In this document: one piece after another, positions 7,342 to 53,156 of the stretch
Numbering within the stretch: the first letter of the stretch is position 1
How the letters are laid out: the number at the start of each line of letters is the position of its first letter
Program-made: the position numbers and the translations under genes
The notes under the pieces: generated by a model
What the model saw: the letters and a program-made list of their open reading frames with translations, nothing else
The model's database searches: none
What the model was told of the DNA's origin: nothing
Source of the DNA: Bugula neritina
Lineage: Eukaryota > Animalia > Bryozoa
Reading direction: 5' to 3'
Assembly: GCA_964035545.1 (NCBI GenBank)
Contig: OZ037773.1
Span: forward strand, 8,895,751-8,959,750
Length of the DNA: 64,000 nt

Positions 7342-8650
7342 TCACCTCGAAGTTCCATGACCCATTACAATATAGGTAAATTAAAATAGCTGCTATAATA
7401 TAATACTACAAGTACAATGCAGTGTAAGTGGTTATTATTTAATAGACAAAGGTATTTAATATAGACTAATATTTATGTGTGGACCTGCAGTAGATGAGAA
7501 ATACAAGATGACTTGTAAGTCTGTACAGGATGTGATGTCACAGAGCAACAGGTATATTATGGTAAATCTTGCGTTACTTTCTCAATACTTTGGAGTTGTC
7601 TTCACACACAGTGTGAAATAAAATACGATTTAAATGAGTCTACATAGTATAATCCTGTGTAATAGTTAATTTTTACAAACATATCGGATTAAAAAGTAAA
7701 TGAATTTTTTCTGAATGAGTGGTTTTTATTCATGTCACAGCCTTTACTTGTCTTATTGTTTGGCGTCTAAGAACACAGCTTCTTGAAGCAATTAATTCAG
7801 TCTAATGAATGAGAATAGTCTGTTGGCAGATTATAGAGGCGTAGAACCAAAGACATTATGGTACTAAGGCTAATCATAACTATACTTAGATTTAACTATT
7901 TGAATATAATTATTATACTAAACAAAGCACTACTTAGCCTGAGAATATGAAGGTACTGAAGCTATAATGTTGATGAATGAGTTGGTTTTGATTTCTAAAG
8001 CTGCGAGCAAATGAATCAAAAATGCTTAATTTACTGGTCAACAACTGTGCTGTTATTCTGAAATGAGAATGTATATAAATTGTTTTCTTAACATTCAATA
8101 TAAGGTTTTGCTGAGCTGCTCAGTCTATGCAATCACAATTATCAAAACATTGTTATGGGTTTATTTAAAAAAGTCTACCAATACACTAATTACAGGCTTG
8201 ATTGGCTTTTGCTTTTAAAATTTTAGACTTGAGGCGAAAGAAAACAAAAGTGAAGCTTAGCATGAGAAATCTTATACAAACATTAGTATGACAAAAGCTT
8301 AAGTTTAGTTTTTGTAAGGGTTTTTCAGAAGTTTTGATTAGCTATTGTAGACTAAATTATTGTTTTAATTATGTTGGGTGCAACTTGTTGAAAGTAACTG
8401 TGAAGGGTAATGACAAAAGCAGTAAGCAGTCAATTGTTGTATAGGCATTACAATTTGAGTATAAAGAACAAATCGATGAGAGGGAGAGTCTATATTATAG
8501 CAGCTAGTAGCTGCATGAGTGCTATTTAGTATTCAATATCTGATTGTTGAATAGGCTTCAAACGTGTATATAAGTTTCTAAGAATCCTCGAATACGTCTG
8601 GCAGATGAGTGTATTTTAATTATTCTTTACATATTATATACATTGTGGCA

Positions 8651-11600
8651 ATGGAACAAGCAGTATCAGAAAGCTCTGGATCTGTGGACTTTAAAGGATG
8701 TAGTGACATACCACTCTGTGTTCTGGTTACAAGTAGAACTACTACTCTGCTTAAACGTGGCATAGCAACTCTTCTAGTGAGAAACACTCAATTTGATGCA
8801 GCAGACCTGTTTCACAATATTGTGAAGTTTCACTCTGATGGTTTGTCTGTAGCTGTTTTAAAAGAGATCAACATTATTGCTACTGTTTTGTCAAAGTTGC
8901 ATCACCCTAACCTTGTGGATATCCAAGGAATTCGTCTTGACATCTCATGGGATCATAAAAATAGAGTCCTCCAAAATGTGCCAAGTTCTTCAAAAATCCA
9001 GCTAAAGAACATTGAAGACAATCTAATACAAGAGATAAGCTCTGGTATCCAACTTCTGGAAGATGACATCATCAAATCTTCCCCAACTGTAGACACCCTG
9101 ACATTTGTAGAAGAAGCTATGACGAAACTCCAGTCCCCCACACCAGCTGAACAGAGAGAAGCCATAGAAGGTCTGGTGGCAGGACTAGTGGCTGGTGTCC
9201 TTGATAAATCTCCTCTCAGTCTGACACGTCTGAGAGACATGTTCCAGGGTGAATTTCCAGAAACTGTAAATGAGTGTCTTCAATATATAGACAGTAGTCA
9301 CTCTCAAATATTGGATAATGGTGGAAAGCTTGAAGGAGATCATGAAATACAAGAACTTCTGGCTCAATACAAGAGATGTGTGAAATTCTTTGTTGGTGAT
9401 TTAAGATGTCTTCCATTCAAATCATCAGATATTGTAAGTTCTTCCTATTAGAAGTCTACAACATAAATAAATGAGACAAAATCATAATAGTATTTGCAAA
9501 GCTTATAAAGAGTTTGCTATTATTTAACTATTTACAAGCTTGCAATAATTTTTAATATTGCAAGCACCTAAAAAGATTATTTCTATAAGCAAGCACTAAA
9601 AGTTTTACACCTATAGCTACCATCTTTGAAAATAAGTATAATCATACAAATGACCTTGATTTTGAAATTAAAATTTCTCATCAGTCTACTTGTTGTTTAG
9701 ATGTTTGAACTGTTTGACAAACTTTTCCTCAATGCTGAAAGCTGTAATGCCATATTGTAAAACTCCGACCAATTCTTTATCATTGTATAATTTTACAGAT
9801 CACCAAAGATCTGGTGGAGATGAGGCCAACTGCTGAAGAGTTGACACTCATTATTACAGGATATGATTGGTGAGTGACTCAATATGTACACCAGTTTAAC
9901 TACCTTCTGTTCTCTTACTTTGCAGAGTAGATAAACATATTGGCTCCTACTGTAATGTACACTAAAATATAATATTCTCCTCTGTCAGGGTGATTTCAAG
10001 AAGAAAGAGCTCTGATAACACAGACACAGATAGAATCAACTTGCTGGCAAAGTAAAATACTATATATTTATATCCTAGTGTTCATTGTGGTGTTAGCTAA
10101 CTTTATATATTTTGCCAGTTTCAAATAGTCCAAAGCTTTATACAGACTATACAAAGTAATATGGTGATTACCAGGATGTTTATATGTTTCCAGAGAACAG
10201 CATTCTATCTGGAGACAAGCCAACCACCATCTGGCTGGTTTATTAGATGGTAAGGAGTCTGGTGCCTTAGATGAGACTCCTGGAGACACTGAAGAGCTGC
10301 AAGAGAAGGTAACTCTATAAGTAAATCATAACTATTAGCCTAGGGCCACACGGTGCGTATTTTCGCATGCAAAAATTGAAATCACGAGCAAAGGTGTCCA
10401 CTGTGCGCGTTGAGAAAACGATCGCACTTGTTGCTCTGCATTCTCAACGCAAGTGCGAATCGTCTCTGTCGTCGTCACCTAATTGGCTGGTATAGTTATT
10501 CAGCGAGCCCAATTTTTTTATTTTAGTGCTACATTCCAGTAAATTGCGTTTTATTAAAAGCGAGTGCAATTTAAAAATGAAAGCTTTATTTATCACGCAT
10601 CACTGACGCTACAGTGGACACCTTTGCTACTTGTGATTTCAATTTTCCCATGTGAAAATACGCACCGTGTGGCCCTAGGCTTAGTTTATAATCTTGATGC
10701 TGATAATCAATACTCTATAACACATGTCATTAACCATGCTAGGGATTTTTTGATAAGCTTTGAAATGCTTTCAACTCAAACCAAATACAGTTTATGAACA
10801 TGGATAATGTATATATGTTACTGGAATGAGTTATAAAACTAACTGTAGCCATTGTATGAAATAGCATGCCATTAAAGCAATCTTTGAGGCCAAAATGAAT
10901 TTTATTTTATATTTTTATAGAATACTGATTTGACTACACAAGAAGTAAACAGTCCTGCACAAACCTCTTCTCAAAGTAAGTACAATAAACTTGTGCTCCA
11001 GTCATTTTTCCCGAATTATGATTAAGTATCAGTACTGATACCAGAATGCTGTTTGTAACAGTGTATTGGGTCTTCTATGAGTTTATTTCATTACGGTCTT
11101 TTATTAGCAATTGCTCTTTACTAATGAGATATTTTATTGTACATATTCTGACTAATACTAACAAAATAGTAATTGCTAGTATACGACAGTTTCATTTTAG
11201 ACAATATGCATTACACCTAGACAAAACTACTCAAATTATGATTATTTTGATGCATCTATAAGACCTACAGATTAATTTCCCCTTAAATTATTTTTTTTAT
11301 TATGAGCAGGAGGAATAAATTTCTTCATTACAGAAAAATTAGTTCACTTATAAAAGGCATATTTTCATTATTAGCCTTTTATTTCAGCTACACCCACTTC
11401 AAAGCATCTGGGTGGCCTTCAAACAGTTCCTTCAGATGTCCCACTGTGTGTTTTGATTGTGAACAGAATTAGAACATTGTTGGTGAAAGCATTAGCCTTT
11501 CAGTTGGTTAGAAAATCAGAATACAACATGGCCGACCTTATTGATGGACTTTCTTCAGTACTTCCTGCCGATTATGGTAAAACCAGCATCAAAGAGCTCA

Positions 11601-14600
11601 ACATCATTGCTAAAATCATATCAAAGATTCAACCTAGAGAAGCAGTAGAAGGTCAGAAAACTCCCGGCATCATTAAATGGGACAACAAATACAACAGATT
11701 GAAAAACGTTCCAACAGGGTTGAGAGTTCAACTGGCAAGTCTTCCATCTTGGTCACTAAAAGTCCCTTGCTTGAACATCTCTTTATTAGAAAAAGACATC
11801 ATCAAATCTTCTCCAACAGTAGAGACATTGACACTTGTCGAAGAAGCTATGAAGAAACTGGAGTCTCCCACACCAGCTAAACAGATAGAAGCCATAGAAG
11901 GTCTGGTGGCAGGACTAGTGGCTGGTGTCCTTGATAAATCTCGACTCAGCTTGACACATCTGATAGACATGTTCCAGGGTGAATTTCCATCATATGTCAT
12001 AAACCTCCTCAAAACTATCAACAATAACCAAGTCCAGATAATGGATAGTGGCAAGAAGATTGAAAATATGGAGTTGAGAGAAGACCTTATCACTGCATTC
12101 AATGATTGTGTGACTTTTCTTATAAAAGACTTCAAGTGTCTCCCAGTCACAGCACCAGAAGAGGTTAGTATGTTAACATAGCATGTTTTGTTTGCTGCTT
12201 TTAATAGTCATGAAAAGTGGTAGATTTTAGAAAGACAATACAGATATTTAAAGTAGCTATTATAATTTTTATTTACATCTCCAAAATTTTATTTTGTGGC
12301 TATAGATACTGTAAACTTCAATCACAGTCGCTATCTCCCTGATAATCCCTGATTGAAAGTTGTTTTCAAGGTGTTGAAAACTTTTTTCTATTGTGGCTAA
12401 TGCCTTTTCTAACATATAACATTTGCTGAGATTAAACTCATTGACATTCACTTATAAGCCAGTGCTCTAACTACTAGACTACTGCTGCTCTTGTGAGCAG
12501 TGTGGAGCCACCATAACTTCTTGGTTTGTAAACAGAATGCTACACAGTTGGTTTAAGGTCATACTTTTCATTTTCTGGCTCTTTGCCAGGTGCTTTATGT
12601 TCTATATGAACAATGTTCCACTGATAGCTCGAACAGGTTGAATGTCACAGGAACAAAAAAATATGAAAAAATAAAGAAACTTATGTTCTCCAATATACTT
12701 TTTTATTTTTTTCAAAAGCCAATTCATGTTTAAGTTATAGCTTGTTGAAAAACATAGTCCCCCTTCCACATTCTTTTCAATTTATACGCTCCTGACTTGT
12801 TATTGTGTCTCAATATGCCTTGTATTTGAGTGCTTGTTAGTCTCGCTTCACTAACTTTGCCTATACTTCACAAGTGCCAGTGCTGCTGGCTCAAAAGCTA
12901 AATGTTATAAACTGTCAGCTAAAACCCAATCTTGTATTCCTAGGTTGGTTGGCCTAAATAAAACAATAGTCAAATCATGATTTCATGTTTTAAAAATTTA
13001 CTCTATTCTAACCTGCTGCCTAGCTAGTTCTATTTTTGATGTATAATTACAAAATTTGTGATACATTTTTTTGGCAACCATGTAATTTATAAAATGCAGT
13101 AATGGTACTTATAATATTATATTATTATCATTATAATATATTATATAGTATTATGTGTGTTTTTATTATCCTGCATAATATCTAATTTATTATTGTTGTT
13201 GTGCAAACAAGTGCAATTAACCTAGTTTTCAAAATGTACCTCTAAATTATCAGAATATCAGTTTAGATATGTTCATGCTTTGTAAGGTAAACCTAAAAAA
13301 AGAGGCTGTATTCCCAAAGTAAAGGGTGTTGAACTATGAACTATATTAGATTAGCCACTCTGCTACCAAGTGCATCAGTATAATATTATATGAATAGCTC
13401 TGATGCTTTGTCTCCGGTGGCTGGCTGCGATATGATAACTTGGCCAACTTCCACGAGTTTAAAATTGGCGCAATTATTCAAGAGGTTACATACTGCACAG
13501 AGCTAGCAGTGATAGTAACCTTGCTATTGGCAGTACTTATTACAACTGCCAGCATATAAGCTGCATTGTAGAATGCCGTTGGGGCAGGCTAGTAAAACCA
13601 AATTCTGCTCTCTAATATACCTTAGACAAAATGCAGCAACATAATTTTTAGTTTCAAATTACATTTGCCACCCTTACATGAGCTGTGGGCTTCATAAAGA
13701 TTCATATGATTAGAGATTTATGCTATAGGCCCTATCTGTGCTAGTGTATGATGAAAATAACACACCATTGTCAAAGTTAACTTCAAGTATGTTGTTTTCC
13801 AGAAACTCAGTAATGTCCATTTATCTCTCGCATACAAATACTTATGTAATAGCATACAGTTTAAGTTTTATTTTAGAGCACATCTGCAAACTCTACAATA
13901 AGAGCTTGCTTTACCAGTCTATTTCAGACCTGTTTTTGTAGCTAGTAATACGCAAGCTACTTATTTTTAAACTTTTGGGTTATTTGTTCAAAACCATTAG
14001 CTTTGCTAGTAACCCGAGACTATTGCAACAGTTGACTGCTATCAACATGAATTGACAGCCTAATAATTATAACCCTTTTGCGGCGCGAAATATTTATGTA
14101 ATGATAGTTACTCATATAGTGCGCATTTTATTAACGATGACTGCGTGGTCTAGAGGTTAGAGGCGTCAGCGAGGAGTTAGTTGGTTATGGTTCACCCCTG
14201 TTTTGTCGCAATTTTTTTTGTCAACTTATGCAAATCCTACGCATGTATAATAAATATGGCTATAATTGTAAAGTTTTTTTTTAACTTTTGTTCAACAGTA
14301 AGACAACATACATGCATAATAATTAGATACTGAACACTGGACTAAACCTGAAATTGATCTTATAGAATACAATGTACTTAAAATAATCATATGTTAATTA
14401 GAGAAACTGAAAGTTCACCTGCTGCTCTATAGACAGACCTTTACTGACAAGACTGCAAAGTGAAGTGATTTAGCTGAAATTAACTCTGCCAAACAAACAA
14501 AGAATTATGTTGTGCTGAGGCATTTTCAATATATTATTGTAACATAGTGAGATGATTCAGCTAAGTGCTAATGTAAAACAGGGAACATTATATTGGCAGA

Positions 14601-17600: not shown

Positions 17601-20600
17601 TATCACATACATGTTATTAAACATGTCAAAAAACTATAGATTGAGATAATTCACATTTGCACTTCTATAAATATACAAATTACGAGCTGAAAGATCACAT
17701 CTCACAGTCATATTTCTATAGTTATTCATTTGTATAGTCACGTGACCAGCAGGAATGCTGGCGCTGTTACGTCACATTTCCCAGCTCATTTCAAAATCGG
17801 CGTTTTGGCTGTTACCAATCTACACCCTCAACTTCAACTAACTTTTTCTACCTTTGGTCAAATGCTTTTTGTCAATGCATGTTTAGAAAAACACAATAAT
17901 ATGTGTGTTTGACCTAAATGGCCATTTATTAGACAAGATAGAGCAATCCTTTAAAGTTCACTAAAATATCTTTATTTGGAAATCACAACTGATCACTACG
18001 AACACATATCTAAAACTGACAATATATACAAACAAAAAGGATAAAGAGATTTAGAACACAAAGGAACAAAGCACAACTATATTAATATTTATAAAACAGG
18101 TTACATAACTGCGTGCACATTACATTAAGCAATGTAGAGACAAGCAATGGCAACAATATCAGTAAAATCTATGCTTGTTGCTTTTGAGTGTAAAAAGTTA
18201 TAAAGCTATTTTACAAAAAGTAGGTAAAAACGGTTTTTCACTCGCCTTTTCAACACTTATGTTCCGCAAGTGTTGAAACTACAAAGGCTGAATAATTATG
18301 TCAATATCTTTTTATGAAAAAAAAAAATCGCAATTCCAAGTCAATAAGTTCTCTCACAATTTGGCCGGCTTTTTGTACTCCTATGACCGTTGTGGCCCCG
18401 TTACCCCTGTAGTGAATTTCCCAATTCACTATATTATGTGAGTCTACTTATACAAAGCTACTGCACCAGGTTGATCACGTTATTATTTACAAAGGTACAA
18501 TAAATGAACTACTACTAAATTAATTGCACGATTACATAATACTGAGCACTTTGTACGCAACTACTCTATGCCAAGTTCCAAGCTGCTCTGCCCGGCTAGC
18601 TACTTAGCTTGCTTCCACTATGAGTAGCTAGCTCCACCTGATATCAATTAACAGTCCTTCCTGATTGGCTAGTATTAGTCGTGCCACTGTCGACCATAAG
18701 ATGCATGTCGGCTGGGAGTCGATGCCTCCACAATAAGATAACATAGAGTCGACCCTTTCGATATATAAACTAGACCACTAATTGCATTACTAAATCCACT
18801 ACACCCCTACTACAGTTATTATACTATAGTGGCAGTAATACATAGCACAAGTATATAGTAGTGATATGCTATCTTATTCTTTGTACTATATTTATAGAAG
18901 AAAGATGAATATTCAACGCTAGTTGGAGAAGCTGCTAGCTACAGCAGCTCTCAACTTGAAGGTATGAGTCTAATGGAGAATCTGAAACTAAGTGAAGGAG
19001 CTGCCGGAGACAGCAGCTTTCAAAGTAAAGGTATGACTATATATGATGTATATAACATGTTAAGTAAAACTATTAAAGTGTAGTGAACTAGAAATGCTAA
19101 ATAATTCATTACTTTACATATTATATTTAACCTACAAACTTGAAATCACTTTGATTGTGTTGTTTTATACATAGTATCTTTATATATAGAGGGTTGCCTA
19201 CAGTTACTAGCTATATACATTAAACAATATGTCACTAATAACATTTGATGAAATGCTTTTTTTGATAATATTATATGTGTATTTTATGCATATCCTTCTA
19301 TTTGAGTATATAGTATTTATTTATAGAATTTGCTTCACAGCTTTATATCTATTTATAATATAATCTAGTAATATCGGTAATGTTGCAGCTGGTACAGAGC
19401 TTCAATACAGTCTAGGTGATTACTCTGTTATCTCTGGAGGTCCCTACACTGATGTAACTGATGGTGGAGGGCATAATATACTAGTTGGTAGAGAGGGAGG
19501 GTTTGATGTATTGGATACTAGTAAAGTATCTGAATCTAGCAGTAGTGTAGGAGGGAGGAGATATGAGATAGTGAAGTCTGTCAGAATAGAAGGGGTGGGT
19601 TTTGTTTGGTCAATACAGAGATATGAGAGCTGTATATATACTCTGTGTAGAGTATATGATCAGTTTCAAGTAGTAGTGTTTGATGCTAACACATATGTTG
19701 AAGTAAAGAGATGGTCTGTACCAGAGGTTGTATCACTCCTTACTAGACTAGCTGTGTGTGATGAGAAGGTCTATATGGTAGATCTCATACATAAACAGCT
19801 AACTGTATTCTCTACAGATGGTAAACACCTCACTAATATTACACATTCTAGTTTCATTGAGCCCTCTGCCCTCTCTGTATGCCCTCCACACAGTATCATC
19901 ATATGTGACTACCCAGCTAACAGAGTACATAAACTAGACACTACAACACATAACATCATATGGAGTTCTACTGCAGTGAAAAGACCTGTAGCAGTATGCT
20001 GTGACCACACACGTGGAGAAGTGTGGGTGTGGCCTTATGATACTGACTGTCTATCCATTCTAGACTCTGAGACAGGTATGCAGCTAATCGTGTTGTGTTT
20101 TTAGTTAGTGTCATTACTAACTCACAGTCTATATATAAGGTTTTAGTTCAAACAATTCTTGTGAGCTACCAGGTTTCAACTAATATTTTGTGCACTGTTT
20201 TGTGGGCTAATAATTTTGCTAAACTATGACACATGAAACAATAACAAAGAAACGTATAAAATTGTAGTTTTATAAATTCTATATATCAATATGCCACTTG
20301 AATTCGTTATAGATTTTACTAACTTAATGTTATTACAAACGTCTAATATACCTTTATATTTAAAGTCCTATGTGTTGACCTAGTTTTCTCATTAGTCTTG
20401 AAAAATTTTTCAAATGTAACAGGTAGTTTTATTCAACATTGAAAAATTTTTGAGTACTGTACCGTGTGGTAAAATTACAACTAAGTATATATTTGTATGA
20501 AATTTGTATAAGGTTTACTTTATATAAGTATAAAATAAAACGTAATATTATTAGATGGTATAAAGGGAAAATGTGGTTACAATTGGTGTGTACACTATAG

Positions 20601-24708: not shown

Positions 24709-27700
24709 ATGGCACAGGCAGTATCAGCAAGCTCTGGATCTGTGGACCTTAAAGTATGGAGTGACATACCACTCTGTGTTCTGGTTACAAGTAGAACTAC
24801 TACTCTGCTTAAACATGGCATAGCAACTCTTCTAGTGAGAAACAGTCAGTTTGATGCAGCAGACCTGTTCAACAATCTTGTGAAACTTTACCCTGATGGT
24901 TTGTCTGAAGCTGTTTTAAAAGAGATCAACATTATTGCTACTATTTTGGCAAAAGTACATTATCCAAACCTTTTGAATATCCAAGGAATTCGCCTTGACA
25001 TCTCATGGAATCATGAAAATAGAGTCCTCCAAAATATGCCAAGTTTTTCAAAGGTCCAGCTAGAGAACATTGGAGATAATCTAATACAAGAGATCAGCTC
25101 TGGTATCCAACTTCTGGAAGATGACATCATCAAATCTTCTCCAACAGTAGAGACACTGACACTTGTAGAAGAAGCTATGAAGAAATTCCAGTCTCCCACA
25201 CCAGCTGAACAGAAGGAAGCCATAGAAGGTCTAGTAGCGGGACTAGTGGCTGGTGTCCTTGATAAATCTCCACTCAGCTTGACACATCTGCTGGACATGT
25301 TCCGTGGTGAATTTCCAGAAACTGTAAATGAGTGTCTCCAGTATATAGACAGTAGTCACTCTCAAATATTGGATAATGGTGGAAAGCTTGAAGGAGATCA
25401 TGAAATACAAGAGCTTCTAGCTAAATACAAAAGATGTGTGAATTTCTTCATTGGTGATTTAAGATGCCTTCCACTCAAATCATTAGATATTGTAAGTTCC
25501 TTATATTGGAAGTCTACAACATAAGTAAATGAGACAAAAAATATAATATTATTTGCAAAGCTTATGAAGAGTTCGTTATTATTTAACTATTTACATTCTT
25601 GCAATAATTTTTTATGTTGCAAGCACCTAAAAAGATTATTTCTAAGCAGGCACTAAAAGTATTGCACCTATTGCTACCATTTTTGAAAAAAGGTATAATC
25701 ATACAACTGACCTTGACTTTGAAATTAAATTCCTCATCAGTCTACTTGTTGTTTAGATGTTTGAATTGTTTGAAAACCTTTTCTTCCATGCTGAAAGCCC
25801 GAGGTGCTATATTGTACAACTCCAACCAATTGCATATATCATTGTATTTTTCAGATCACTAAGGATCTGGTAGAGATGAGACCAACTGCTGAAGAGTTGA
25901 ACTTCATTATCACAGAATATGATGAGTAAGTGACTCAATATGTACACCAGTTTAACTCTTTCTATTCTCATACTACACAATGTAGGTATAAGTGTATAAG
26001 CTATTACTATAACACTAAAATATAATATTATATTCTGTCAGGGTGATTTCAAGAAGAAAGAGCTCTGATGAAAGAGATGCAGATAGAATCAACTTGCTAG
26101 CAAGGTAAGAGACTATGTATGCATATCCTAGTGTTTACTGTGGTGTTAGCTAACTTTATATAATTAGTCAGTTTCAAACTGTCCAAAGTTATGAAAAGTA
26201 ATATGGTGATTACTAGATTTTTTATATGTTTCCAGAGAACAGTATTCTATCTGGAGACAAGCCAACCACCATCTGGCTGGTTTATTAGATGGTAAGGAGT
26301 CTGGTGCCTTAGATGAGACTTCTGGAGACACTGAAGAGCTGCAAGAGAAGGTAACTCTATAAGTAAATCATAACTAGTAGTCTATAATCTTGATGCTGAT
26401 AATCAGTACTCTATAACACATATCATTAAGCAAACTAGGGATTTTTTGATAAGCTTTGAAATGCTTTCAACTCAAACCAAATACATTTTATGAACATGGA
26501 TAGTGTATATATCAGTTACTGAAATGAGTTATAAGAATAGCTGCATGCGTGTGCCATTGTATGAAATAGCATGCCATTAAAGCCATCTTTGAGGCTAAAA
26601 TAAATCTTATTTTATATTTTTATAGAACACTGGTTTGACTACAAAAGAAGTAAATACTTCTGCACAAAGCTCCTCTCAAAGTAAGTACAATAAACTTGTG
26701 TCTCAGTCATTTTCCTAAATTATGATTAAGTTCTAGCATTAGTACCAGAGTACTATTTATAACAGTGTATGAGATTTTCTATGAGGTTATTTTATAGCGG
26801 CCTTTTGTTAACAATTGCTCTTTACTAATGAGATATTTTATTGTACATATTATACTAACTAATACTAACAAAGTAGTAATTGCTAGTATACCCCAGTTCC
26901 ATTTTAGACATTATGTATTAGACTAAGTCAAGGCTACTCAAATCATGATTATTTTGATGCTTCTAAGACCTACAGATTGATTTTCCTTTAAATTATTTTT
27001 CTTGTGACATTATTTTATTGTGAGCAAATCATAGCTTAAATTTTTCATTACAAAGAAAGTAGTTCACTTATAAAATGCATGTTTTCATTATTAGCTTTTT
27101 TATTTCAGCTACACCAGCTCCAAAGCATCTGGGTAGTCCTCAAACAGTTCCTTCAGACATTCCGCTGTGTGTTTTGATTGTGAACAGAATTAAAACATTG
27201 TTGGTGAAAGCATTAGCTCTTCAGTTGGTTAGAAAATCAGAATACAACATAGCCGACCTTATTGATGGACTTTCTTCAGTACTTCCTGCCGATTATGGTA
27301 AAACCAGCATCAAAGAGCTCAACATCATTGCTAAAATCATATCAAAGATTCAACCTAGAGAAGCAGTAGAAGGTCAGACAACTACCGGCATCATTAAATG
27401 GGACAACATAAACAACAGATTGGAAAACGTTCCAACAGGGTTGAGAGTTCAGCTAGCAAGTCTTCCACTTGGGCCACTAAAAGTTTGTTGCTTGAACATC
27501 TCTTTATTAGAAGGCGTCATCATCCAAACTCTACCAACCGTAGAGACATTGACACTTGTAGAAGAAGCTATGAAGAAACTCCAGTCCCCCACACCGGCTG
27601 AACAGAGAGAAGCCATAGATGGTCTGGTGGCAGGACTAGTGGCTGGTGTCATTGATAAATCTCCATTCAGTTTGACACGCCTGATAGACATGTTTTGTAG

Positions 27701-30700
27701 CGAGTTTCCACCATCTGTCATAAACCTCCTCAAATTTATCAACAATAACCAAGTTCAGACAATGGAAAGTGGCAAGAAAATTGAAGATATGGAGCTGAGG
27801 CAAGTACTTGTCGCTGCATTCTATGACTGTGTGATTTTCCTTATCAAAGATTACAAATGTCTCCCAGTCACAGCACTAAAAGAGGTTAGTATGTTAACAT
27901 AGCATGTTTTGTTTACTGATTCTAATAGTCATGAAAAGTGGTAGATTTTATGAAGACAATACAGATATTTAAAGCAGCTGTTATAATTTTTATTCACATC
28001 CCCAAAAGTTTATTTTTTGGCTATAGATACTGTAAACTTTCATTACAATTGCTATCTCCCTGAGAACCCCTGATTGAAAGTTGTTTTCAAGGTGTTGAAG
28101 ACTTTTTTCTATTGTGGCATTTATGACAGAAATCCTTTTTTAACATCCAACATATTTTGCTTCAATTAGACACATTGACATTCACTTATAAGCCAGTGCT
28201 CTAACTACTAGACTACTGCTGCTCTTGTGAGCAGTGTGGAGTCACCAGAACTTCTTGGTTTGTAAACAGAATGCACGAGTAGTTCTATCAGATAAAATAA
28301 AAGTGAATTCTTGGTATAATTAAAATGTTGGAACGTCTGGTAAAAAAAGGTTTTCATCATGGGGCTAGAGATTGTTTTTTTATTCTGGCATTTATGTCAG
28401 CATGCCTTTTGTAACATCACTGATGGTTTTTAATAAGAGTAGACTCACTGACGTTCACTAAGCCACTAAGCAATGTGGATCTATCAAAACTTTTTGGTTT
28501 CTATCAGAATGCTATAGAGTTCCATCAGATATAAAAAAGTGAATTTTTGGTAGAATTAAAATGGACAGATTTGTAACTATAGTAGAGCATGAATCCATCC
28601 GCTCATTTCTGAGCCATTTTATTTAGTTTTTAATATCCGATTGCTTAAAGCTTGCTCTGAACTCAATCACTGCCATCATTGTTGCAGGCTTGTAATGAAT
28701 ATCTACAACTCTCTTTAACTGCAGATGAGTGGAAAATGACATTCTCACAGCATGACAGGTAATATGAGACAATACACAAGCTATTATTCCTCATCACAGC
28801 TCTTGCAATATATGGACTTGGCTGAAATATGTATATGTAAATAATCTACATGTATAATATAAGTAAATCAACAGTTACACTCTCTGAGATGAAAAGTATA
28901 GTTGGTTATTTGATTAAATATAAGCTATAATGTTTAATTCAAAAAATTATATTTATGTCGCTTATTACTGGAAAGTTTTCTTGTGCAACTTATTACTATA
29001 CTTTCCCTGAAACTCAGATATCTTCAATTCTTTTCAGCAGCAATAATAACTGTTTCTTGAAAACATAGCTGTGATAGTTTTAGTCAAAATCCACAAACTA
29101 AAAGTGCTAAAATATTTTCTTCTCCACTTCAGAATTATCACAAATATTGACAACACTGATGGAGCTAAGACAGAGGAAATCAATCTTTTAGCAAAGTAAG
29201 ATTTTGAGCCATTATTAAATATTAATATCTGGACAATTGTTTACTTATATTAATTTACAAGTTTCACTATTCTGAGGCCATAGTTCAAGTTGTATCTGGT
29301 TGTAGTGAACAGTTCAGTTTATGGAAAAAGACAAATCAGTTGCTGGGAGATTCTATTGAAATACCAAACATTGCTGACATAAAACGCATCTACAAGGTAA
29401 TTGACAACTATAGAGCAAAGCAAATTGTTCTACTATAGTTATATACTACTAGCTCTAGTACAAGTAGCAGTTGTAGCAGTTGTAGTAGTGGTGGTGGCGA
29501 TGGCGGTGGTGGTGATGGTATCATCAGCAGTAACCATTTAAGGATATAGCTTAGTTGCTTTAGTTGGTCTGACCAGAATAGCTGAAGAAGTATTATATCA
29601 TGTGCTTTATATAATTTGATTGCTTGGTAAATTATCAACCTTGATGGTTCCATTTATGTTTTTGTTATTCCTTGTACTATTTATAGAAGAAAGATGAATA
29701 TTCAACACAAGTTGGAGGAGCTGTCGGATACAGCAGCTCTCAACTTGAAGGTGTGACTCTGATGGAGAATCTGAAACTAGGTGAAAGAGCTGCCAAAGAC
29801 AGCATCTCACAACGTAAAGGTATGACTATAATGTATAGCATGTCGTAAAACATTTTAAGTAATATGAACTACATTTATGCTAAATAATTAATTAGTATAA
29901 TTGGGGTATTGAACCTGCAAATTTGAGATCAGTTAGATTGTCTTATTCTGAGCAAGAGTCTTTGTGTGATGGTTAGCGAACGTATATACTACTCTCACGT
30001 GTTGGGCATCCAATAAGACTGAAGCACGTGATTACCCCTTCCGGAACAGGATGCTTCAGTAAGACAGATAGAGTAGTTAATTAGTAGGAGCGCGTTAGTA
30101 AATGTAGTAGGCTTGTATTAGATTGTAAATGTATTTTCGACACTGGATGTGTCTCTCTTTATTTTATATGAGTACAACAAATATAGTTCATTGTGTCACG
30201 CTACCAACAGAGTAATTCATCTAGTTACTAAGTGAATCCACCATCATTGCACACACGCAGAACCCACCCTAAGATGATAATTGGCAGAATTATTACATTT
30301 GTATACAGAGTTGTCTTCTTAGCTGCTGTGTAAAGTAATGATACTACAGTTAATTGCTATTTCTGCAAATTGAATGCAAACAACCATGAGTGTACAAATT
30401 GCTTTATATAATATTTTATGTGTATTTTATACAATATTGAGTTATAATACATTAAAGCATTCATTTATAAAATTTGCTTAAAAGCTTTATTCATTCTAAT
30501 ATATTCATTTATAATATAATCTGTTAATATATGTATTGTTGCAGCTGGTACAGATTTTCCGTACAGTCTAGATGATTACTCTGTTATCTTGGAAAGTTAC
30601 TGCTATGACGTAGCTGATGGTGGAGGGCATACTATACTAATTAGTAGATGGAAAGGGTTTGATGTATTGGATACTAGTAGTAAAGTATCTGAATCTAGCA

Positions 30701-32208
30701 GTAGTGTAGGAGGGAGGAGATATGAGATAGTGAAGTCTGTCACAATAGAAGAAAGTGGTTTTATTCGGTCAATACAGAGATATGAGAGCTGTATATATAC
30801 TCTGTGTAGAGTAAATGGTCAGCTACAAGTAGTAGTGTTTGATGCTAACACATATGTTGAAGTAAAGAGATGGTCTGTACCAGAGATTGTAGGATACCTT
30901 ATTAAACTAGCTGTGTGTGATGAGAAGGTATATATAACAGATTACAGACATAAACGGCTAACTGTATTCTCTACAGATGGTAAACATCTCACTAATATTA
31001 CACAGTCTATAAGTTTCATTGAGCCCTCTGCCCTCTCTGTATGCCCTCCACACAGTATCATCATATGTGACTTCTCAGCTGACAGAGTACATAAACTAGA
31101 CACTACAACACATGACATCATATGGAGTTCTACTGCAGTGAAGATACCTGTAGCAGTATGCTGTGACCACACACGTGGAGAAGTGTGGGTGTTGTCTTGT
31201 TATACTGACTCTCTGTTCATTCTAGACTCTGAGACAGGTATGCAGCTAATCATGTTTATTGTAAGTTTAATGCCACCACATACTATATATATAGTTTGAT
31301 GTATATGTTGTTTCGGTGTAAATAGGGCCTGTAATACGGACAGGTTTCAAATCTTAACTTTGTGCAATTTTTATATGGCTAATAATTCTGCTAAACCATG
31401 CAGCATATGAGACAATATGAGACAATAGTAATACAACTTCTGAAATTATAGCCTTGTAATTTCTATATACCCAACTTAATGCATACTTGACTACATTAAA
31501 TTTCAATTACTTTTTATTATTGCAAACAGGCCTAATATAATCATATTTCGGTCCCCTTTGTTAGGCTAGTTTTATCATTCTCCTAAGAAAGTTCTTGAAA
31601 CATAATGGCAGTTTTACTCCATATAAGCTACATTCTGTTTAAAAGTAGAACATCTCCTTCAGCATAGAACCTTGTGTTCCAGAGAGCCCTGCACCATGTG
31701 GTTATTGAGTCTAAACGCATGTATAAAATTTAATATAGTATATAGTCCATATAAATATATAATTAAACATATTAAGGTAGAAGTTAATTGTATATTTGCA
31801 ATAAATGTGTAGACTGTAGAGTTATCTCATCACAACAGTTGGAAAACTTTATGGTAATAACTGCTGCAGCATATCAGCTAAACATTCTAATCATGAAATG
31901 AATGAAATTTTTTTCAACTCATATGAATTCTAGATTCTAGAACAAACATTACTATTTGACTTTCTGGTGCCATTTATATGGAAAATATAAATTATAAGTT
32001 ATTTATTATTTTCATGCAAAGGTAAAGCTTGAATTTGGAATTTAATAAAATATATATACTAATACATTTTGTAGGAAAGCAGAAGCAGACAGTAAGCAGA
32101 AGAGAAGACTTTTTATCTTCTCCTTTTGGTATGTGTGTAGTGGAAGGACAACTCTGGGTAGTATCTTCCTTCAGCGGACTAATAAAACATAAAATTGTCA
32201 CCCACTAA
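24709..32208 (+). CDS. Array gene copy 2: two degenerate HEPN-like modules + NHL-like beta-propeller (~1015 aa)
   Basis: Exons 24709-25491, 25855-25925, 26042-26104, 26236-26350, 26626-26680, 27109-27884, 28688-28758, 29133-29195, 29306-29396, 29687-29819, 30545-31237, 32075-32208 (3048 nt, open). Same phases as copy 1. Confidence 0.85.
29965..30297. mobile_element. Solo LTR (TGTGAT...ATTACA, 4-bp TSD TTTG)
   Basis: tttg|tgtgatgg...attattaca|tttg; absent from the matching intron of copy 1 (~19180). Confidence 0.8.
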
Positions 32209-36612: not shown

Positions 36613-37471
36613 TGTTTTTTAATTTAGCTCAGACTGAAGCCACACAAACTAACGCTGCTGTGCTATATGAATGTTTTATGTTAGTAGCACAATACGTTTT
36701 TTGGAAGAATGACTTTTTTGTGTTTAAAATAAACCTGACTTAAAATTTGCATTTTACTTTATCATTATGGTTGCCACTGCAGCATGGTTAACTAGGCATG
36801 TGCAGAGCGGAAGTCATGGACACCTATGAAGCTAGTTCAAACTATACCAACATTTTCAAAGTACATGTTGTATCGAAATAGTAATTTTAATAATCAGACC
36901 TCATAAAAGTTTTAGTATTATTGTGTGTAAACAGTTTTAAGTTGATGTATTTATAGCAATAACGTGCATAATTTAGTAAACTTAATTTAGAGTTTAGGCA
37001 ATGCTCATAGAGCTTATTACCTTATTGTCACTGTGGCGATATTCAGATAGAATAGAGTTGCCCTGCGTGCAAACCAACATGATATTTAATGTATTACTGT
37101 ATTAGGTGTGGGGAAGTGTTGAAGGAATTTTTTAAATTTAATCAATTTTAAAATAAAAATGTCTAATAAATTGTGCTGTAAAATATTTCTAAGCACAAAA
37201 GAACTATATGCTATTAAGCATTGCAATATTATGCAGTTTTTGATTTAATTAAGTCTGCCCTACACACATCAACTTCAGAGCTACGAATTATTCTGATTTT
37301 TTATTCGATCTTCTGTATATAAATTCCTTTATTGTTTAAGGCACCATTTCATTTCAATATTTTGCTTCGTAAGGTGTTTTAGCTTTAAACATTTGGGTGC
37401 AATTTATGATTTTTTAGCCTAGAGTTCTTGCCCTAATTTATTCTAGTTTCTTTTTTAGATATTTATGAGAA

Positions 37472-40400
37472 ATGGCCATCAGAACAGATGCTAGCTATAA
37501 TGACATAGGATTCTGTGTGCTGGCTGGTTGCAACACTGAAGCTGTTCTTCGCCAGTCCATAGCCTCTGTGTTGATCAGAGAATTGGATTCAAACTATCAT
37601 CGATTAGCAGATGTGGTGGGGCGAAGGGTAAACTTTCAAGATGACAATGACTATATAGATCAAATAATCCAAGTGGCCAACACTATTACTGGAGAGCATT
37701 CCGTGGAAGATTGGGAAAACTTAAAAGGTAAAATTCTTGGAAAATTTACAAGACCCAAGTCGTTATCATGCGTTCATCTGTCAGAACTGATTGACGCTGT
37801 GGAGAAAAGCTGGAGTGTTGACCATCGAAGTTGTGTAGATGAGTTGATCTTCGGGTTACTACAGCTTGCTCTTCAAAGTAAAACACTCGACAGGCGATAC
37901 CGTTACACTTTTGCTGATTTGATCAAAATGGTGTGCCCTGGTAAAGCTGATACTGTTGGTTTACCGCTGTTTGCCAACTCTCCCATTTCTAATCCTATGA
38001 CCCCAGGAGTATGTGGTAGACTGCACAATGTCAAAAAAACTCGCAATAACATAGTTCATGAGGTTCTTCATTTTACTAGTGAGAGAAAAGAGTTTGAAAT
38101 CAATTACACACGTGCTGTGAATTTCTGTGTTACAAATTTCAACTGCTATCCACTAATAAAAGAGGTAAAATATTATAGCATGTTGGAAATATAGTTGAGT
38201 GATTTTGTTTAGCTTTTAATATTATAAACACATGTTGATATATGTTAAATGACAATTATTTATACATTTTGTATTGTAAAAGAAAGCCTGAAGTTTCTGT
38301 TGTAGACTGTGTTAGATGACCTTCAAAATATTACACTAAACCTACCTGGCTATGGCGCGATTAAAGATGCTTATGAAATGTAAGTAGATGAAATGCAAAT
38401 GAACCAAACTTTGGACCGTTTGCTATAACTTTGAGGTTTTGGATAAACCTTGTGCTATGTAAGATTTTGTAGTATCTACTTGTAGTTAGACTGAGAGTAA
38501 TACTATAGTATCTACTAGTAGTTAGACTAAGAGTAATACTATAGTATCTACTAGTAGTTGGACTGAGAGTAATACTATAGTATCTACTAGTAGTTGGACT
38601 AAGAGTAATACTATAGTATCTACTAGTAGTTAGACTAAGAGTATAGTATATACTAGTAGTTAGACTAAGAGTAATACTATAGTATATACTAGTAGTTAGA
38701 CTGAGAGTAATGCTATAGTATATATTAGTAGTTAGACTGAGTGATGCTATAGTGTCTACTAGTAGTTGGACTGAGTGATGCTATAGTATATACTAGTTGT
38801 TAGACTGAGAGTAATACTATAGTATCTACTAGTAGTTAGACTGAGAGTATAGTATCTACTAGTAGTTAGACTGAGAGTAATGCTATAGTATCTACTAGTA
38901 GTTAGACTGAGAGTATACTATCTACTAGTAGTTAGACTGAGAGTAATACTATAGTATATACTAGTAGTTAGACTGAGCGTAATACTATAGTATCTACTAG
39001 TAGTTGGACTGAGTGATGCTATAGTATATACTAGTAGTTAGACTGAGCGTAATACTATAGTATCTACTAGTAGTTAGACTGAGCGTAATACTATAGTATC
39101 TACTAGTAGTTGGACTGAGTGATGCTATAGTATATACTAGTAGTTGAACTAAGAGTAATGCTATAGTATATACTAGTAGTTAGACTGAGAGTAATGCTAT
39201 AGTGTCTACTAGTAGTCGGAGTTTAGCTCTCTTGTTGACTCTGTTGTAGGTCAGCAGCACAAAAAGGTCTATCTGCAGGAGAGATCAAGTCTCGTTTAAA
39301 GTTAGTCTCTTTTATTATCTTCTAATCTAGTGATCAGTCAATAAGATTATGAATTTGTGTCGATTGGTAGCAGAGTTTGGTTACATGAAGCTGATTTACT
39401 AATGAAACTATTTGTGAGAAATTGGTAACTTACAACTTGACAGAATTGAATTGCTCTCTAAATCGTAATATATTGGATATTGTTAAACTGATTTTATAAA
39501 TCTCTAGCCTATTAATTAGAAATCTGGAAAATTATCTAATAAGTACAAACAATGTTTATGTTCAAGCCAATGGGAACACCAATATAATGCCTAATATTAC
39601 CTCAATATCTTCTTAACTTCCTCTCAATATTTCCACAACGTCCCCTCCTATATTTCAAGAATTTTCCCGGCATGATTCTTGCATAGAAAGCGTTTAAGGC
39701 AAATGTTCTCAAGAAAAGCAACTTTTGCTGAGCTTAGAAATTTGCTCAATTTCGTTGGACCCCCAGTTTGTCTCGATTTTTATTCAATTTTAATTCTTTC
39801 TTCCTGGTAACGTTACCAAGCATAAGCTGCTCTACAAGGGTCATTCTTTACACGGATACACTGAAATAGAATGTGCTTCATGAAGGTGTAGTTTTGGTAA
39901 TGGTTTGCATTTATTTGGTAACTATTTTGTTTGTAAGTTTGTAAGAAATCAGAAATATTTATTTGTGATTAGCTATAAGTAGTTGAAAAGTTATTGATTT
40001 TAAAATGTTTTATTCTCGCAGGAAATATGATATGTGATGCGTGAATTAAAAGGCTTATGCTGTTTAGAAAAAGGATATAAATTAGCACTTTGCTTTGACT
40101 GGCATGGTTATCTTATTCTACCTTACTATCACCTGCAGACAACTGGAAACTTTACAACGGAGAGCTAATAAGGCAGTTGAGAAACTTGATAAGGCTATTC
40201 GGTATCAGGAAAGAGGAGATTTACCTCGATCTCGAGCTGAAATGTTGGAAGCAAAAGGACTCCTGACTGCAGGTATAATAATCAATTGCTTTGTTCAAAC
40301 ATTAAGTACAGTTTAGCATTTTTACTGTTCTGCTTTCAGCCCTATTTCACTCTGTACTCTCTATTTCACTCTGTACTCTCTATTTCACTCTGTACTCTCT

Positions 40401-40922
40401 ATTTCACTCTGTACTCTCTATTTCACTCTGTACTCTCTATTTCACTCTGTACTCTCTATTTCACTCTGTACTCTCTATTTCACTCTGTACTCTCTATTCC
40501 ACTATGTACTCTGTATTTCACTATGTACTCTCTATTTCACTATGTACTCTCTATTTCACTCTGTACTCTCTATTTCACTCTGTACTCTCTATTTCACTAT
40601 GTACTCTCTATTTCACTATGTACTCTCTATTTCACTCTGTAATCTCTATTTCACTCTGTACTCTCTATTTCACTATGTACTCTCTATTTTACTCTGTACT
40701 CTCTATTTCACTATGTACTCTCTATTTCACTCTGTACTCTCTGTTTCACCCTATAAACTCCTAATACATTACTGTTGGTCTCAGGAATATAGTATTGGTT
40801 ACCCGCTTTCTAAAAATAGACTGAATGTTGAGAAAGGGCAGAAAACTCCGACAATAACTTGTGGTACTTTATAATATATTCTAGTTTTGTATTAATTTTC
40901 AGGTGGAAATACACACAAGTAG
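37472..40922 (+). CDS. Putative catalytically intact HEPN-domain ribonuclease (~323 aa); single-module paralog of the array genes
   Basis: Exons 37472-38164, 38306-38379, 39250-39300, 40139-40272, 40903-40922 (972 nt); in-frame TGA just upstream of the ATG. Motifs CVLAGCNTEAVLRQSIA (ExxxR), YTFADLIKM and RLHNVKKTRNNIVH (RNxxxH). Intron phases 0,2,2 match each array module. Confidence 0.75.
38470..39215. repeat. ~36-bp intronic minisatellite (agtagttagactgagagtaatactatagtatctact)n
   Basis: About 20 variant tandem units. Confidence 0.95.
40342..40745. repeat. 19-bp intronic minisatellite (ctatttcactctgtactct)n
   Basis: About 21 tandem units. Confidence 0.95.
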
Positions 40923-42083
40923 TTTAAAGAGAAGTGATTTAGACAGCCAGCTGTTATATAACATTTCCAGCCTACAAGGATAATGCACTGGTAACTACGA
41001 ACTGGTAACTATGCAGTGATAACTACGCACTGGTAACTATGCACGTAGGGAGATAGTTTGCATCCATTAGATTATTTTATAGTTTTACAATGTATTCCAC
41101 ACTTTGCATTTATACTGCAGTTTTGTAACACCTTTTTATTAGATTTTTTATTATTTCCTAATTTTTTATATGCACTTGTATTGTGAATTTATCACTTGCA
41201 AGAACTTTGTATAAATTTCTGTAGATTAAACATCTTCAGTTTTGTAGATGTTACACTTTCAAGTTCTATAGTTTTTACCCTCTTTACTAAAACCAACTAA
41301 AATTGAATATTTTTAACATATATTTATTCTTAGTATCAACTTGGTACAACTTTTTACTCAGTAATCAAGCTGTATAGCCTTAAATCACACATTGAATAAT
41401 ATTATTATATATTTTGTAAAAATGATGCGTTCTACATCAAATGTTTTCACATCCTCTATTATGCCTTTTGCTTTGTTCAAGTAGGAAAATTTAAATCCTA
41501 GTTTTTTCCATTTTAGTTTGATTTTGTAAGCCGTTATATTAAATAAAATTAGTTAGTTGATCTCTTCTACCTTGATTCAAGTTTATTCATAGACTCAGGG
41601 CTGACTACACTCATAATGAGTTAAGGCAATTGGACAGAATGTATCATAGATGGTTGGCAATAAATAAATATACCCAAAAGGAGGATTTTACATTTCCCTA
41701 CCTTTTAGATGCATCGAAATCCTAAAACTTACAGAAAAAGTACTGCGTACTAAACCTGTTTTTGACAAGGTCATGGTATAGAAGGGAGGGAAGAAGGGCA
41801 AGTAGTGGAGAGGGGGGTAGTGGGAGAAGAGAGGGGGAAGGGGGTAGTAATGTTTGATAAACAGTAAAGGCTGTTGATTTTGCCAAGAACCTGCTAACTT
41901 TATTTCAACTATGCAGAGAATATAAGAAAACTTACATCTGAAATATAGTTTCTAAAAATAAAGAAGTTCGCACACTACATACATTAGAAAGTATCCTACC
42001 ACAAGTTAAGTAAACAATACATCATGCTGCAGGCTAAATAGACAATCTGGAATAAAATATTATGTCGTCACATAGACTAAGGT

Positions 42084-45000
42084 CTACATCCCAACAGGGG
42101 TGTCTCCTGCTTTAGCTTCAGTATCTTCCTCACTGATGTCTAGCTTAGAGCCTTCGCCATGAGTTGAATATTCAATACGGGGCACATCCATGCCAGCCTA
42201 GAATATAGTAACGTAGAGCAACAAATCCTACACTTCTTTGAATCTTGATTGAAATGAAATGCACACATAATAGTTGGCTGCTTTTAGGGGCTAAAGTATA
42301 TACAAACATAAGTTCCTATCAAACGCACCAGACAGTCTAAGTACAACCAATAGAATTGAATCTCATAGTATTAACTCGGATACTGTTAAAGAGAGAGAAA
42401 CTATGACAACTCACCCGCGCATTTTCACACAAATATTTGAAGTTTCCAGGATCAACGGTGAAAGGTTTGACTATTTCCCTAAACTCCTCGTATGATAGGA
42501 GAACGTTGGGTTTACCAGCTACTTTCAGCTCCTGTAATAATCAACACTGTGCACTACAATGAGCTATACATAGTACGGGCATAGCCATGTTTCCAGACTG
42601 CATTATATTAGGGCCAGGGGAGGGGGGTACGTGGAAGTCAGTGACAGCCTGACAGCTGTAGCAGTGGCCATTTTACGTTTAAGCTTTGAGAAGGCCGCAT
42701 TTGAAGCGTTACTTCATATACAACAAATACTTATCTATTCAAACAATGACACTCCCTGCATATCACAAAGTTACAAATGTTGAAGATAAGACATTCCCGC
42801 TGCCCACAGATGCTGCCTCTAGATGCTGCCAGTTACGTACCTTCTGATTGAAGAGTACTTTGACAAAGTGTTTGTTGCTGGAGTTATCTTTCCACAGTTC
42901 ATACGCAATAGAAGACGCATACGTCGGCCAGTTTCCGTCGAAACAGCCGAGAGAAAGGAGTAAAGGCATTATCATCGTGTCGTGACTAGAGTAAAGGCAG
43001 AGCTTGGGAACTCTTGTACTACCTGCAACATTACTCTACTACATACAACACTAACTACAACATTACTCTACTACATACAACACTAACTACAACATTACAT
43101 TACTACATTTTACGCAACAGGAAAACAGACTGTATTTCAATCATAGAGCTTCCTTGTAGTTTGAGTGTCACAGGTTATTATAATTTTTAAGCTTTTGGTA
43201 ACCACGGTGACAGTTCAGAGGTGAAGTCTTGCTGATACAAAGTAGAGCATCTACCATACTGTTGAGCTTATTATACTCTAACTAGAACAGACAGACAGCC
43301 TGTGCTGGTTGGTCACTGGCCAATCAGGAAGTAGCTGCTGCTAGAAAGTCAGCGATTAGAAAGTCAGTGACTGACCTTTGAGTGCCTCGTCCATCCTACT
43401 CAGCACGGTGTGGTTGAAAGGACCAACAGCAAGTTTCAGTCCCATCGGCCGGTCACTTGGTGTGCCTGTGATGCACTGTATGAAGTCAAGCTGAGCCTGG
43501 AGTAGACATCATTGCATAGTGAGATAGACCTCAATATATAGAGAGATACACATCATTGTATAGTGAGACAGACATCATTGTATAGTGAGACAGACATCAA
43601 TGTATAGAGAGATAGACATCAATGTATAGAGAGATAGACATCAATGTATAGAGAGATAGACATCATTGTATAGAGAGACAGACATCAATGTATAGTGAGA
43701 CAGACATCAATGTATAGTGAGATAGACATCATTGTATAGAGAGATAGACATCAATGTATAGTGAGATAGACATCAATGTATAGAGAGATAGACATCAATG
43801 TATAGTGAGATAGAAATCAATGTATAGCGAGATAGACATCATTGTATAGAGAGATAGACATCAATGTATAGTGAGATAGACATCAATGTATAGAGAGATA
43901 GACATCAATGTATAGTGAGATAGAAATCAATGTATAGCGAGATAGACATCATTGTATAATGAGATAGAGATCAATGTATAGAGAGATAGACATCATTGTA
44001 TAGTGAGAAAGACATCAATGTATAGAGAGGTAGACATCATTGCATAGTGAGATAGATATCAATGTATAGAGATGTATCATAGTGAACCAAGCAAAAGGTG
44101 TACCTGACGTAGAATTCCGTCGTAGAGATGCTCAAACTCGCGAGGGAGAGGCAGGCCATGAGCTTCTCGGGTGAAGATGTTGTCCTGTACATTTATTATA
44201 TTCCAGCCATGATCCTCGGGGAAGTCCACCCACTGATTCAGCTTAGCCATTAACTTCTGCAAAGCAACCAATAGAACGCTGTGTTATATATGTATGGATG
44301 TAGAGCCAATAGAACGCTGTGTTTCATATGTGTGACTGTACAACCGGTAGAATTCACTGTTTGTAAAACATTATCATAAACAGAGCGTATCTTCAGCTAC
44401 TCCTCCTAACCTTTTTAGACTGAGCTCTAAGACTTTCCAGGTGATTTGAAAATCATAGAGTTTTTATAACGTTCTGACTCTTGGAGAGAATATAACAAAA
44501 TTCACAAAATTTATCTTTACGACTTGACAAATTGCCAGATAATGAATTATGAATCCCGTCAGCATCACACATAGAAAACTAATATGCTACAAGTTCTGAT
44601 ATTGTAGGATGAAAATATTGATTGAGGATGCAAATGTTAATTTTACATGACATTTGCAAGTAGACGAACTGCATACAAAGAGATGTAGAGAACTACATAC
44701 AAAGAGACCTACAGTACTACATCCTCTAATGCCGCACTCCGAAACCTTTCCTGTGTGGTCAAAATAATGGAGCTAGTAGCAACTGCTTCAAATGATAGCA
44801 ACCATGAAATTATGCAAATTTGGCATTCATGTATTAAATTAGCTTAGATAAGTTGGTTAAACTATTTTTAGATAATTCAAATTAAAATAGCATGCTTGTT
44901 ATTATCAACACGGATCAACAGGCATTGTTTCCACTGCTCTATTTAAATATAATTTTGGTTATGTAACTCTAGAATTTCACATCGTAGCCTAGTTATACAG

Positions 45001-49173: not shown

Positions 49174-53156
<3,983 letters not shown>

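Follow-up and report, generated by a model that had tools for sequence, protein, structure and literature searches.

A gene on the forward strand of a 64,000-nt stretch of Bugula neritina DNA (contig OZ037773.1, positions 8,895,751 to 8,959,750; the whole stretch is referred to here as the window and positions are counted from its first letter) specifies a product of 323 amino acids (aa), the first coding exon of which encodes a helical domain that, judged by its structural models, very probably has the HEPN fold. The domain conforms in modelled structure and in motif to the HEPN superfamily, clan KNTase_C of Pfam, and is missed by the profile of every described HEPN family, and because of this combination we assign it to a new family, in which the copy studied here (the target) is by analogy a probable metal-independent ribonuclease (RNase). 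The original prediction for this stretch, made from its letters, was of an active endoribonuclease, possibly from an uncharacterized animal HEPN family; the HEPN-like family stood, and is one found, as far as the databases go, in Bugula only, while the RNase activity would follow by analogy with characterized members. HEPN RNases are core defence effectors of prokaryotes (Cas13, Csm6, HepT and the Abi systems); those that have been characterized are metal-independent, with an active site that is a composite of two paired domains. To our knowledge animal HEPN RNases are known from few cases, namely RNase L, Ire1 and the predicted DZIP3 and CXorf38 expansions.

Position and conservation of the Rx4H motif

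The AlphaFold (AF2) model of the target, made with a 26-row alignment (predicted local distance difference test, pLDDT, 81.9; predicted template modelling score, pTM, 0.83), is all-helical, with helices at residues 7–38, 42–53, 61–73, 78–92, 99–112, 118–135, 147–154, 178–198 and 205–222. The HEPN core has been described as two α-hairpins forming an up-down four-helix bundle, with a polar residue (N, D or H) after the arginine of the motif, an optional conserved acidic residue in helix-2 and frequent inserts within the domain (Anantharaman et al. 2013, PMC3710099), and the Rx4-6H motif itself is found where helix-3 ends or the loop to helix-4 begins (PMC3710099). In the target model R191-N192-x-x-x-H196 is found at this canonical place, where the penultimate helix (178–198) has its C-terminal end, separated by a loop (199–204) from the last helix (205–222), in agreement with the intact RNxxxH that had been predicted. 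Residues 1–231 would thus form a divergent HEPN domain with a four-helix core made up of residues 7–38, a helix from the 118–154 region, 178–198 and 205–222, inside which a helical bundle of about 90 residues would be nested, and R191-N-N-I-V-H196, which closes the third core helix, would occupy the HEPN active-site position. All four strings quoted in the original prediction are present in the one exon (EAVLR at residues 23–27, YTFADLIKM at 145–153, LHNVKKTRNNIVH at 184–196 and YTRAVNF at 212–218), and the domain is N-terminal as had been stated, with four further small coding exons downstream.

The insertion of about 120 aa that had been proposed within the domain corresponds to a large helical module (a gap of 117 aa between EAVLR and YTFADLIKM, or residues 42–135 or so in the model), but it is an ancient and conserved module and not a recent insertion. 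All of 25 sequences have a tryptophan at position 81 (W81), and this residue, an acidic helix (E/D-x-L-[IV]-x-G-L, residues 123–129), the N-terminal helix and F208/Y212/V216 are common to all family members; D/E124 is widely conserved across the family. As W81 and the acidic helix are shared by all members, the module, of about 90 residues in the target and from about 60 to about 130 in the family, is on sequence grounds part of the ancestral domain. Residues 55–145 taken alone resemble generic four-helix bundles in structural searches.

A profile of the target and its paralogues in the window detected 24 single-exon copies on contigs C9, C6, C8, C1 and C5 of the 216-Mb genome, and with a further subfamily at C9:10.45–10.50 Mb the family comes to about 28 loci. 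R191, N192, V195 and H196, together with a basic residue at position 188, are kept together in five of 12 subfamilies, including all close orthologues of the target, and are replaced together in the other seven, among which are all four modules of a gene array in the window (described below). The motif-bearing subfamilies are the target clade, L010 at C9:9.02 Mb, L030 on C1 and two P0013-like clades. The columns [KR]xxRNxxVH are the only ones that separate motif-bearing from motif-less subfamilies (R, N, V and H occur conserved in 5/5 of the former and at most 1/7 of the latter), and RNNIVH, whose conservation among orthologues had been proposed as a check, is kept in P0001, P0002, P0003, P0018 and P0020. 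It should be noted that the motif alone is weak evidence because it also arises in shuffles of the target protein (RN...H in 3% and generic Rx4-6H in 75%), and that it is conservation and position that carry the claim. The ExxxR element, which had been read as part of the HEPN signature, fared less well: in paralogues R27 is replaced by S, A or K, E23 is weakly enriched (4/5 motif-bearing and 3/7 motif-less subfamilies) and the acidic residue of HEPN domains is placed in helix-2 (PMC3710099). In a family tree built without the motif columns and rooted at its midpoint, at least two to four changes of motif state are needed, and because the root has motif-bearing clades on either side the simplest reading of the sequences is that the motif is ancestral and has been lost several times independently.

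Several individual loci may be mentioned here. Three tandem genes of a distant P0013-like subfamily (L034, L037 and L038, G000:C9:10449208-10501824) keep IRNxIVH or TRHKIVH and were not listed by the profile search seeded from the window copies. L010 (G000:C9:9019147-9019851, minus strand) and L030 (G000:C1:20587471-20588193, plus strand) are single-copy paralogues with the motif intact (TRNKVVH and QRNRSVH respectively), and L011 at C9:8858935 has kept the R and lost the H (SRHQIIL).

Comparison of exon 1 with the mRNA of a sister lineage (90% nucleotide identity, dS 0.15) gave a ratio of non-synonymous to synonymous substitution (dN/dS) of 0.66 for the whole exon, and by segment, where small counts make the values indicative only, of 1.25 for residues 1–40 (few sites), 0.86 for residues 41–140 and 0.32 for residues 141–231, which bear the motif and are the most constrained part. 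On these indicative values the gene is fast-evolving with its catalytic-type end the most constrained. Many defence genes also evolve fast.

The rate of evolution is also what might be expected of a non-nuclease with an HEPN-like fold, that is, an RNA-, nucleotide- or protein-binding adaptor that pairs, for example, with the motif-less array modules. The HEPN domains of Roquin and sacsin act as adaptors of this kind. Seven of the 12 subfamilies are motif-less yet open and expressed, and the second-best structural match of the target model (Z 8.7) is Roquin, a non-catalytic HEPN protein split by a large inserted domain, both of which would suit an adaptor. However, five subfamilies and all orthologues retain R, N, V and H jointly, and no other columns separate the two classes; this fits an active site and not a scaffold, and the motif-bearing third of the exon is the most constrained. 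We consider an adaptor role unlikely.

Structural and profile comparisons

An exhaustive structural search with the target model against 48,161 representative chains, in which a Z score under about 13 may reflect no more than a helical bundle, placed HEPN proteins first among the matches that take in both the N-terminal helix and the last two helices. The matches were AF_0298 (2hsb; Z 8.9, root-mean-square deviation 2.7, 97 residues aligned), Roquin (4txa; 8.7), 1wwp (7.9), SO_3166 (5yep; 7.3), the sacsin HEPN domain (3o10; 7.1), YutE (1ylm; 7.0), Csm6 (6tug; 6.6), HepT (7ae2; 6.6), ST0689 (1wol; 6.3), 8xdj (6.3) and GlnE (3k7d; 6.3). Although they are a tiny share of the 48,161 chains, HEPN entries make up at least 13 of the 50 rows listed. 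A second model, that of the paralogue L037 (22% identical to the target, pLDDT 73.1), retrieved 2hsb (Z 6.0), 1wwp, Roquin, the AbiA C-terminal region, AbiF, Cas13h1, HI0074, HepT and sacsin with Z scores of 4.5–6.0. The top weak rows of Foldseek for the target model were Csm6, and on a second look at the list the top nine rows were all HEPN; the ESM-Atlas fold search listed HepT-like and DUF4145 clusters. The nearest neighbours of both the target and L037 in language-model space, where no alignment is used, were exclusively of the HEPN clan (RiboL-PSP, RnlA/RNase LS, Csm6, DUF4145 and Cas13a).

HepT, in which R102 and H107 are catalytic (7ae8/7ae2), is a dimeric, metal-independent RNase, the toxin of HEPN-MNT toxin–antitoxin systems, and minimal HEPN/HepT proteins (2hsb, 5yep, 7ae2 and 6m6u) are the best whole-domain structural matches (Z 8.9 to 6.6, 96–100 residues aligned). 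In these proteins as in the Bugula domain helix-3 ends in R-x4-H, the R being followed by a polar residue, but the two have no detectable sequence similarity, the Bugula domain is twice as long through its nested module of about 90 residues, and its gene is an animal, multi-exon one without an MNT partner and with a coiled-coil-like tail. The Roquin HEPN domain (4txa and 4qik, Z 8.7 and 7.5, spanning model residues 6–228) is likewise an animal HEPN domain with N- and C-terminal halves split by a large inserted domain; there, however, the insert is the ROQ winged-helix and the catalytic residues are missing, whereas the Bugula insert is a helical bundle and the Rx4H motif is intact. RiboL-PSP-HEPN (PF18735) and the RnlA/RNase LS HEPN domain are the nearest named language-model neighbours of the two divergent members, but these families are bacterial and the domains associated with them are absent from the Bugula protein.

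Pfam was scanned with 23 family members and 8 more, NCBIfam with the target and the sequences of the PDB with the family profile. The DZIP3/hRUL138-like HEPN domains (PF18738) have undergone lineage-specific expansion in invertebrates, are often fused to immune-type modules and have an RNxxxH that is 'mostly conserved', followed by an aromatic-rich last helix (PMC3710099). The Bugula family resembles them as an animal HEPN-like family expanded in a marine invertebrate, but membership was rejected: no member was matched by PF18738 (cut-off 27 bits) even at E ≤ 10, and when the family profile was compared by hhalign with the DZIP3 domain of Bugula the probability was 0.1%. PF18738 does work in this genome, where it detects another gene at C6:308951 with 74 bits, and a word search started from the DZIP3 domain of that gene found its orthologue and nothing else. 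This true DZIP3-type HEPN gene (L006, G000:C6:308951-309898) has its domain split by an in-frame simple-repeat intron, which the NCBI model EB796_004162 (P0017) reads through as THSITTHS..., probably an annotation artefact.

A search of 1.84 billion cluster representatives with the family profile found 14 proteins, 10 of them Bugula-type. P0012 and P0014–16 were rejected as distant relatives, being bacterial Big_2 repeat proteins and spurious matches. As far as the sequence databases go the family thus appears to be restricted to the Bugula lineage, and a literature search found no publication linking Bugula with HEPN in this sense. Marine invertebrates were already known to have lineage-specific expansions of HEPN; what is added here is an HEPN-like family that current profiles miss and that public annotation describes only as 'hypothetical protein'.

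A number of results weigh against the assignment as an HEPN RNase. The Pfam HEPN profile search, another of the checks proposed for the original prediction, gave no family above cut-off, and the same was true of NCBIfam and of other families; the best Pfam HEPN match was that of the paralogue L030 with PF18735 (HEPN_RiboL-PSP), at 13.8 bits (cut-off 28.4) and E 0.054, in which residues 163–243 align to the motif-bearing C-terminal part of the model, and the target itself had no match to PF18735. ArdA, GMIP-FCH and similar entries were set aside as sub-threshold Pfam noise. The family-profile search of PDB sequences found nothing, and Foldseek gave no match to PDB entries at E ≤ 0.001 for either model. 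All Z scores are 8.9 or lower and within the range possible for generic helical bundles, so that no single one is decisive; the two AF2 models come from one family alignment and are not fully independent; the language-model scores (0.82–0.90) are rated as leads only; and the second core helix may be either 118–135 or 147–154. Constraint on the exon as a whole is weak (dN/dS 0.66).

The profile searches, the Z scores and the Foldseek result could mean that the domain is an unrelated, lineage-specific helical bundle whose RNxxxH and HEPN-like matches are coincidental: four-helix bundles are common, RN...H arises by shuffling, no sequence profile supports HEPN and the language models may key on the motif. 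Coincidence would nevertheless have to account for the abundance of HEPN entries in the structural list and in the top nine rows of the second look despite their tiny share of the chains, for the same outcome from a paralogue only 22% identical and from alignment-free features, and for a motif at the exact topological site of Rx4-6H, and we regard it as quite improbable.

Gene structure, expression and origin

The open reading frame that contains exon 1 (37472-38194, plus strand) starts with the ATG at 37472, two codons downstream of an in-frame TGA, and a consensus splice donor (AAAGAG/GTAAAA) follows codon 231 at 38164/38165. Joining the five coding exons (Table 1) gives the 323-aa product, which ends in GGNTHK and a stop codon at 40920-40922 and consists of the exon 1 domain and a tail of about 90 residues (exons 2–5) with a charged, heptad-like stretch. 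From this stretch we infer that the tail is a coiled coil; a Pfam scan of the tail gave no match. Introns 2 and 4 consist mostly of satellites, one of 36 bp at 38470-39216 and one of 19 bp at 40342-40749, each in 21.5 copies, and spurious open reading frames at 40286-40874 arise from the latter.

A word search with the target returned only three close proteins (69–81% identity). One of these, P0001, is the product of a spliced, mRNA-like contig of 1,110 nt (L033), and its tail was used to find the later exons. The collinearity of L033 with the window stops at the AG at 37457-37458, and because of this a 5' untranslated region (UTR) intron with its acceptor at 37458/37459 is likely; the 5'UTR exon of L033 was sought in the window and not located. 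Contigs from four RNA-like public runs of four studies, placed on 37300-42300, confirmed the joints 38164/38306, 39300/40139 and 40272/40903 with GT..AG ends. The remaining joint, 38379/39250, is listed as 38378/39250 with TG..AG ends because the contigs differ by one letter there, and the window itself has GT at 38380-38381.

The public counterpart found by cluster look-up, the B. neritina hypothetical protein EB796_004020 (KAF6037658.1), is also of 323 aa with the same tail. It is about 81% identical to the target, as against 94% for the DZIP3-like gene and its own counterpart, values that suggest B. neritina or a sibling lineage as the source of the window. As the RNA-like contigs carry EB796_004020-type letters in exon 4 and do not cover 37472-37860 (the 5' two thirds of exon 1), the spliced expression is that of an orthologue or allele in a sister lineage and not strictly that of the window haplotype. 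All four listed differences between window and contigs in exon 4 (at 40185, 40192, 40200 and 40211) are non-synonymous (L>I, K>M, R>W and E>D) and match the NCBI sequence of EB796_004020, and the tail may be under diversifying selection.

The original prediction had also raised, as a speculation, retroposition or horizontal acquisition as an origin of the single-exon core. This, including descent from a bacterial toxin, we regard as highly improbable, since against the confinement of the whole domain to one exon and the bacterial affiliation of its nearest language-model neighbours there stand four confirmed coding introns and a likely 5'UTR one, about 28 paralogous loci in tandem clusters, in which the one-exon module recurs with a related exon after it, a GC content equal to that of the surrounding DNA, and matches to Bugula sequences only, with no prokaryotic relative, among the 1.84 billion representatives, the few bacterial hits being Big_2 artefacts.

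Table 1. Positions in the window of the target gene, of the parts of its HEPN-like domain and of the neighbouring array
Feature	Position	Strand	Remarks
Coding exon 1	37472..38164	+	231 codons, ends in phase 0; whole HEPN-like domain; collinear with mRNA-like contig L033 from 37457
Helix 1, residues 7-38	37490..37585	+	Contains EAVLR (E23 37538-37540, R27 37550-37552) and near-invariant R36; pLDDT ~90
Internal helical module, residues 42-135	37595..37876	+	Five helices in the AF2 model; invariant W81 at 37712-37714
YTFADLIKM, residues 145-153	37904..37930	+	Short helix 147-154, then long low-confidence loop 155-177
Helix 178-198, equivalent of HEPN helix-3	38003..38065	+	AF2 model and position rule of PMC3710099
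R191-N192-N-I-V195-H196	38042..38059	+	Rx4H catalytic-type motif; conservation (see text)
Last helix, residues 205-222, equivalent of HEPN helix-4	38084..38137	+	F208, Y212, V216
Coding exon 2	38306..38379	+	TVLDDLQNITLNLPGYGAIKDAYE..; tblastn with P0001 tail; AG/GT sites; joints
Coding exon 3	39250..39300	+	tblastn with P0001 tail; joints; splice sites
Coding exon 4	40139..40272	+	Coiled-coil-like KQLETLQRRANKAVEKLDKAIRYQERG...; joints; tail the same in P0018
Exon 5, start	40903..40922	+	Last six codons and TAG; 3'UTR onward to at least ~41015
Array, motif-less module	8609..9451	+	
Array, motif-less module	11453..12181	+	
Array, motif-less module	24709..25524	+	
Array, motif-less module	27075..27902	+	
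Array, further entry	19511..20104	+	
Array, further entry	30589..31299	+	

Possible function and gene neighbourhood

If the assignment holds, the target would be a cytosolic-type protein that acts as a metal-independent endoribonuclease, by analogy with HepT, Csm6, Cas13, RNase L and RnlA (the characterized HEPN RNase families are listed in PMC3710099). Pairing of two HEPN domains would bring their R/H motifs together into an active site, with the coiled-coil-like tail as a candidate dimerization element, and a role in defence may be envisaged on the same analogy. A two-copy complex prediction of residues 1–231, run without controls, gave a score of 0.10 and a mark of 0.32, values that weigh in neither direction on pairing. 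Were it to cut RNA, the gene would offer a simple system for the cooperation of active and pseudo-HEPN domains in an invertebrate host; were it not to, it would be another fast-evolving, lineage-specific helical protein. Bugula lives with a vertically transmitted bacterial symbiont.

The neighbouring array consists of two tandem genes on the plus strand, each with two motif-less copies of the domain followed by an exon for an NHL-type propeller (NHL repeat, E 3.6e-4), and the NCBI model EB796_004025 (P0022, 1230 aa) combines module A, module B and the propeller in a single protein. Within the stretches given in Table 1 the motif-less modules are at 8651-9424, 11453-12160, 24709-25488 and 27075-27881. 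The division of the roughly 28 loci into small proteins that keep the motif and motif-less copies fused to NHL propellers suggests a sensor–effector hypothesis, in which the small motif-bearing protein would serve as catalytic subunit in a two-component immune system specific to bryozoans: the propellers of the array genes would sense a ligand and the pseudo-HEPN modules would pair with, or release, the active HEPN domain, leading to RNA cleavage. We consider this specific arrangement very doubtful; were it true, the system would be an animal counterpart of HEPN RNases gated by a sensor, among them RNase L, Csm6 and Cas13.

The cluster of HEPN-like and propeller genes ends at about 41 kb in the window. 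Beyond it, at 42763-51045 on the minus strand, lie housekeeping-type genes, including a histidine phosphatase branch-2 exon (46682-47035) and an AAA ATPase exon (50698-51045).

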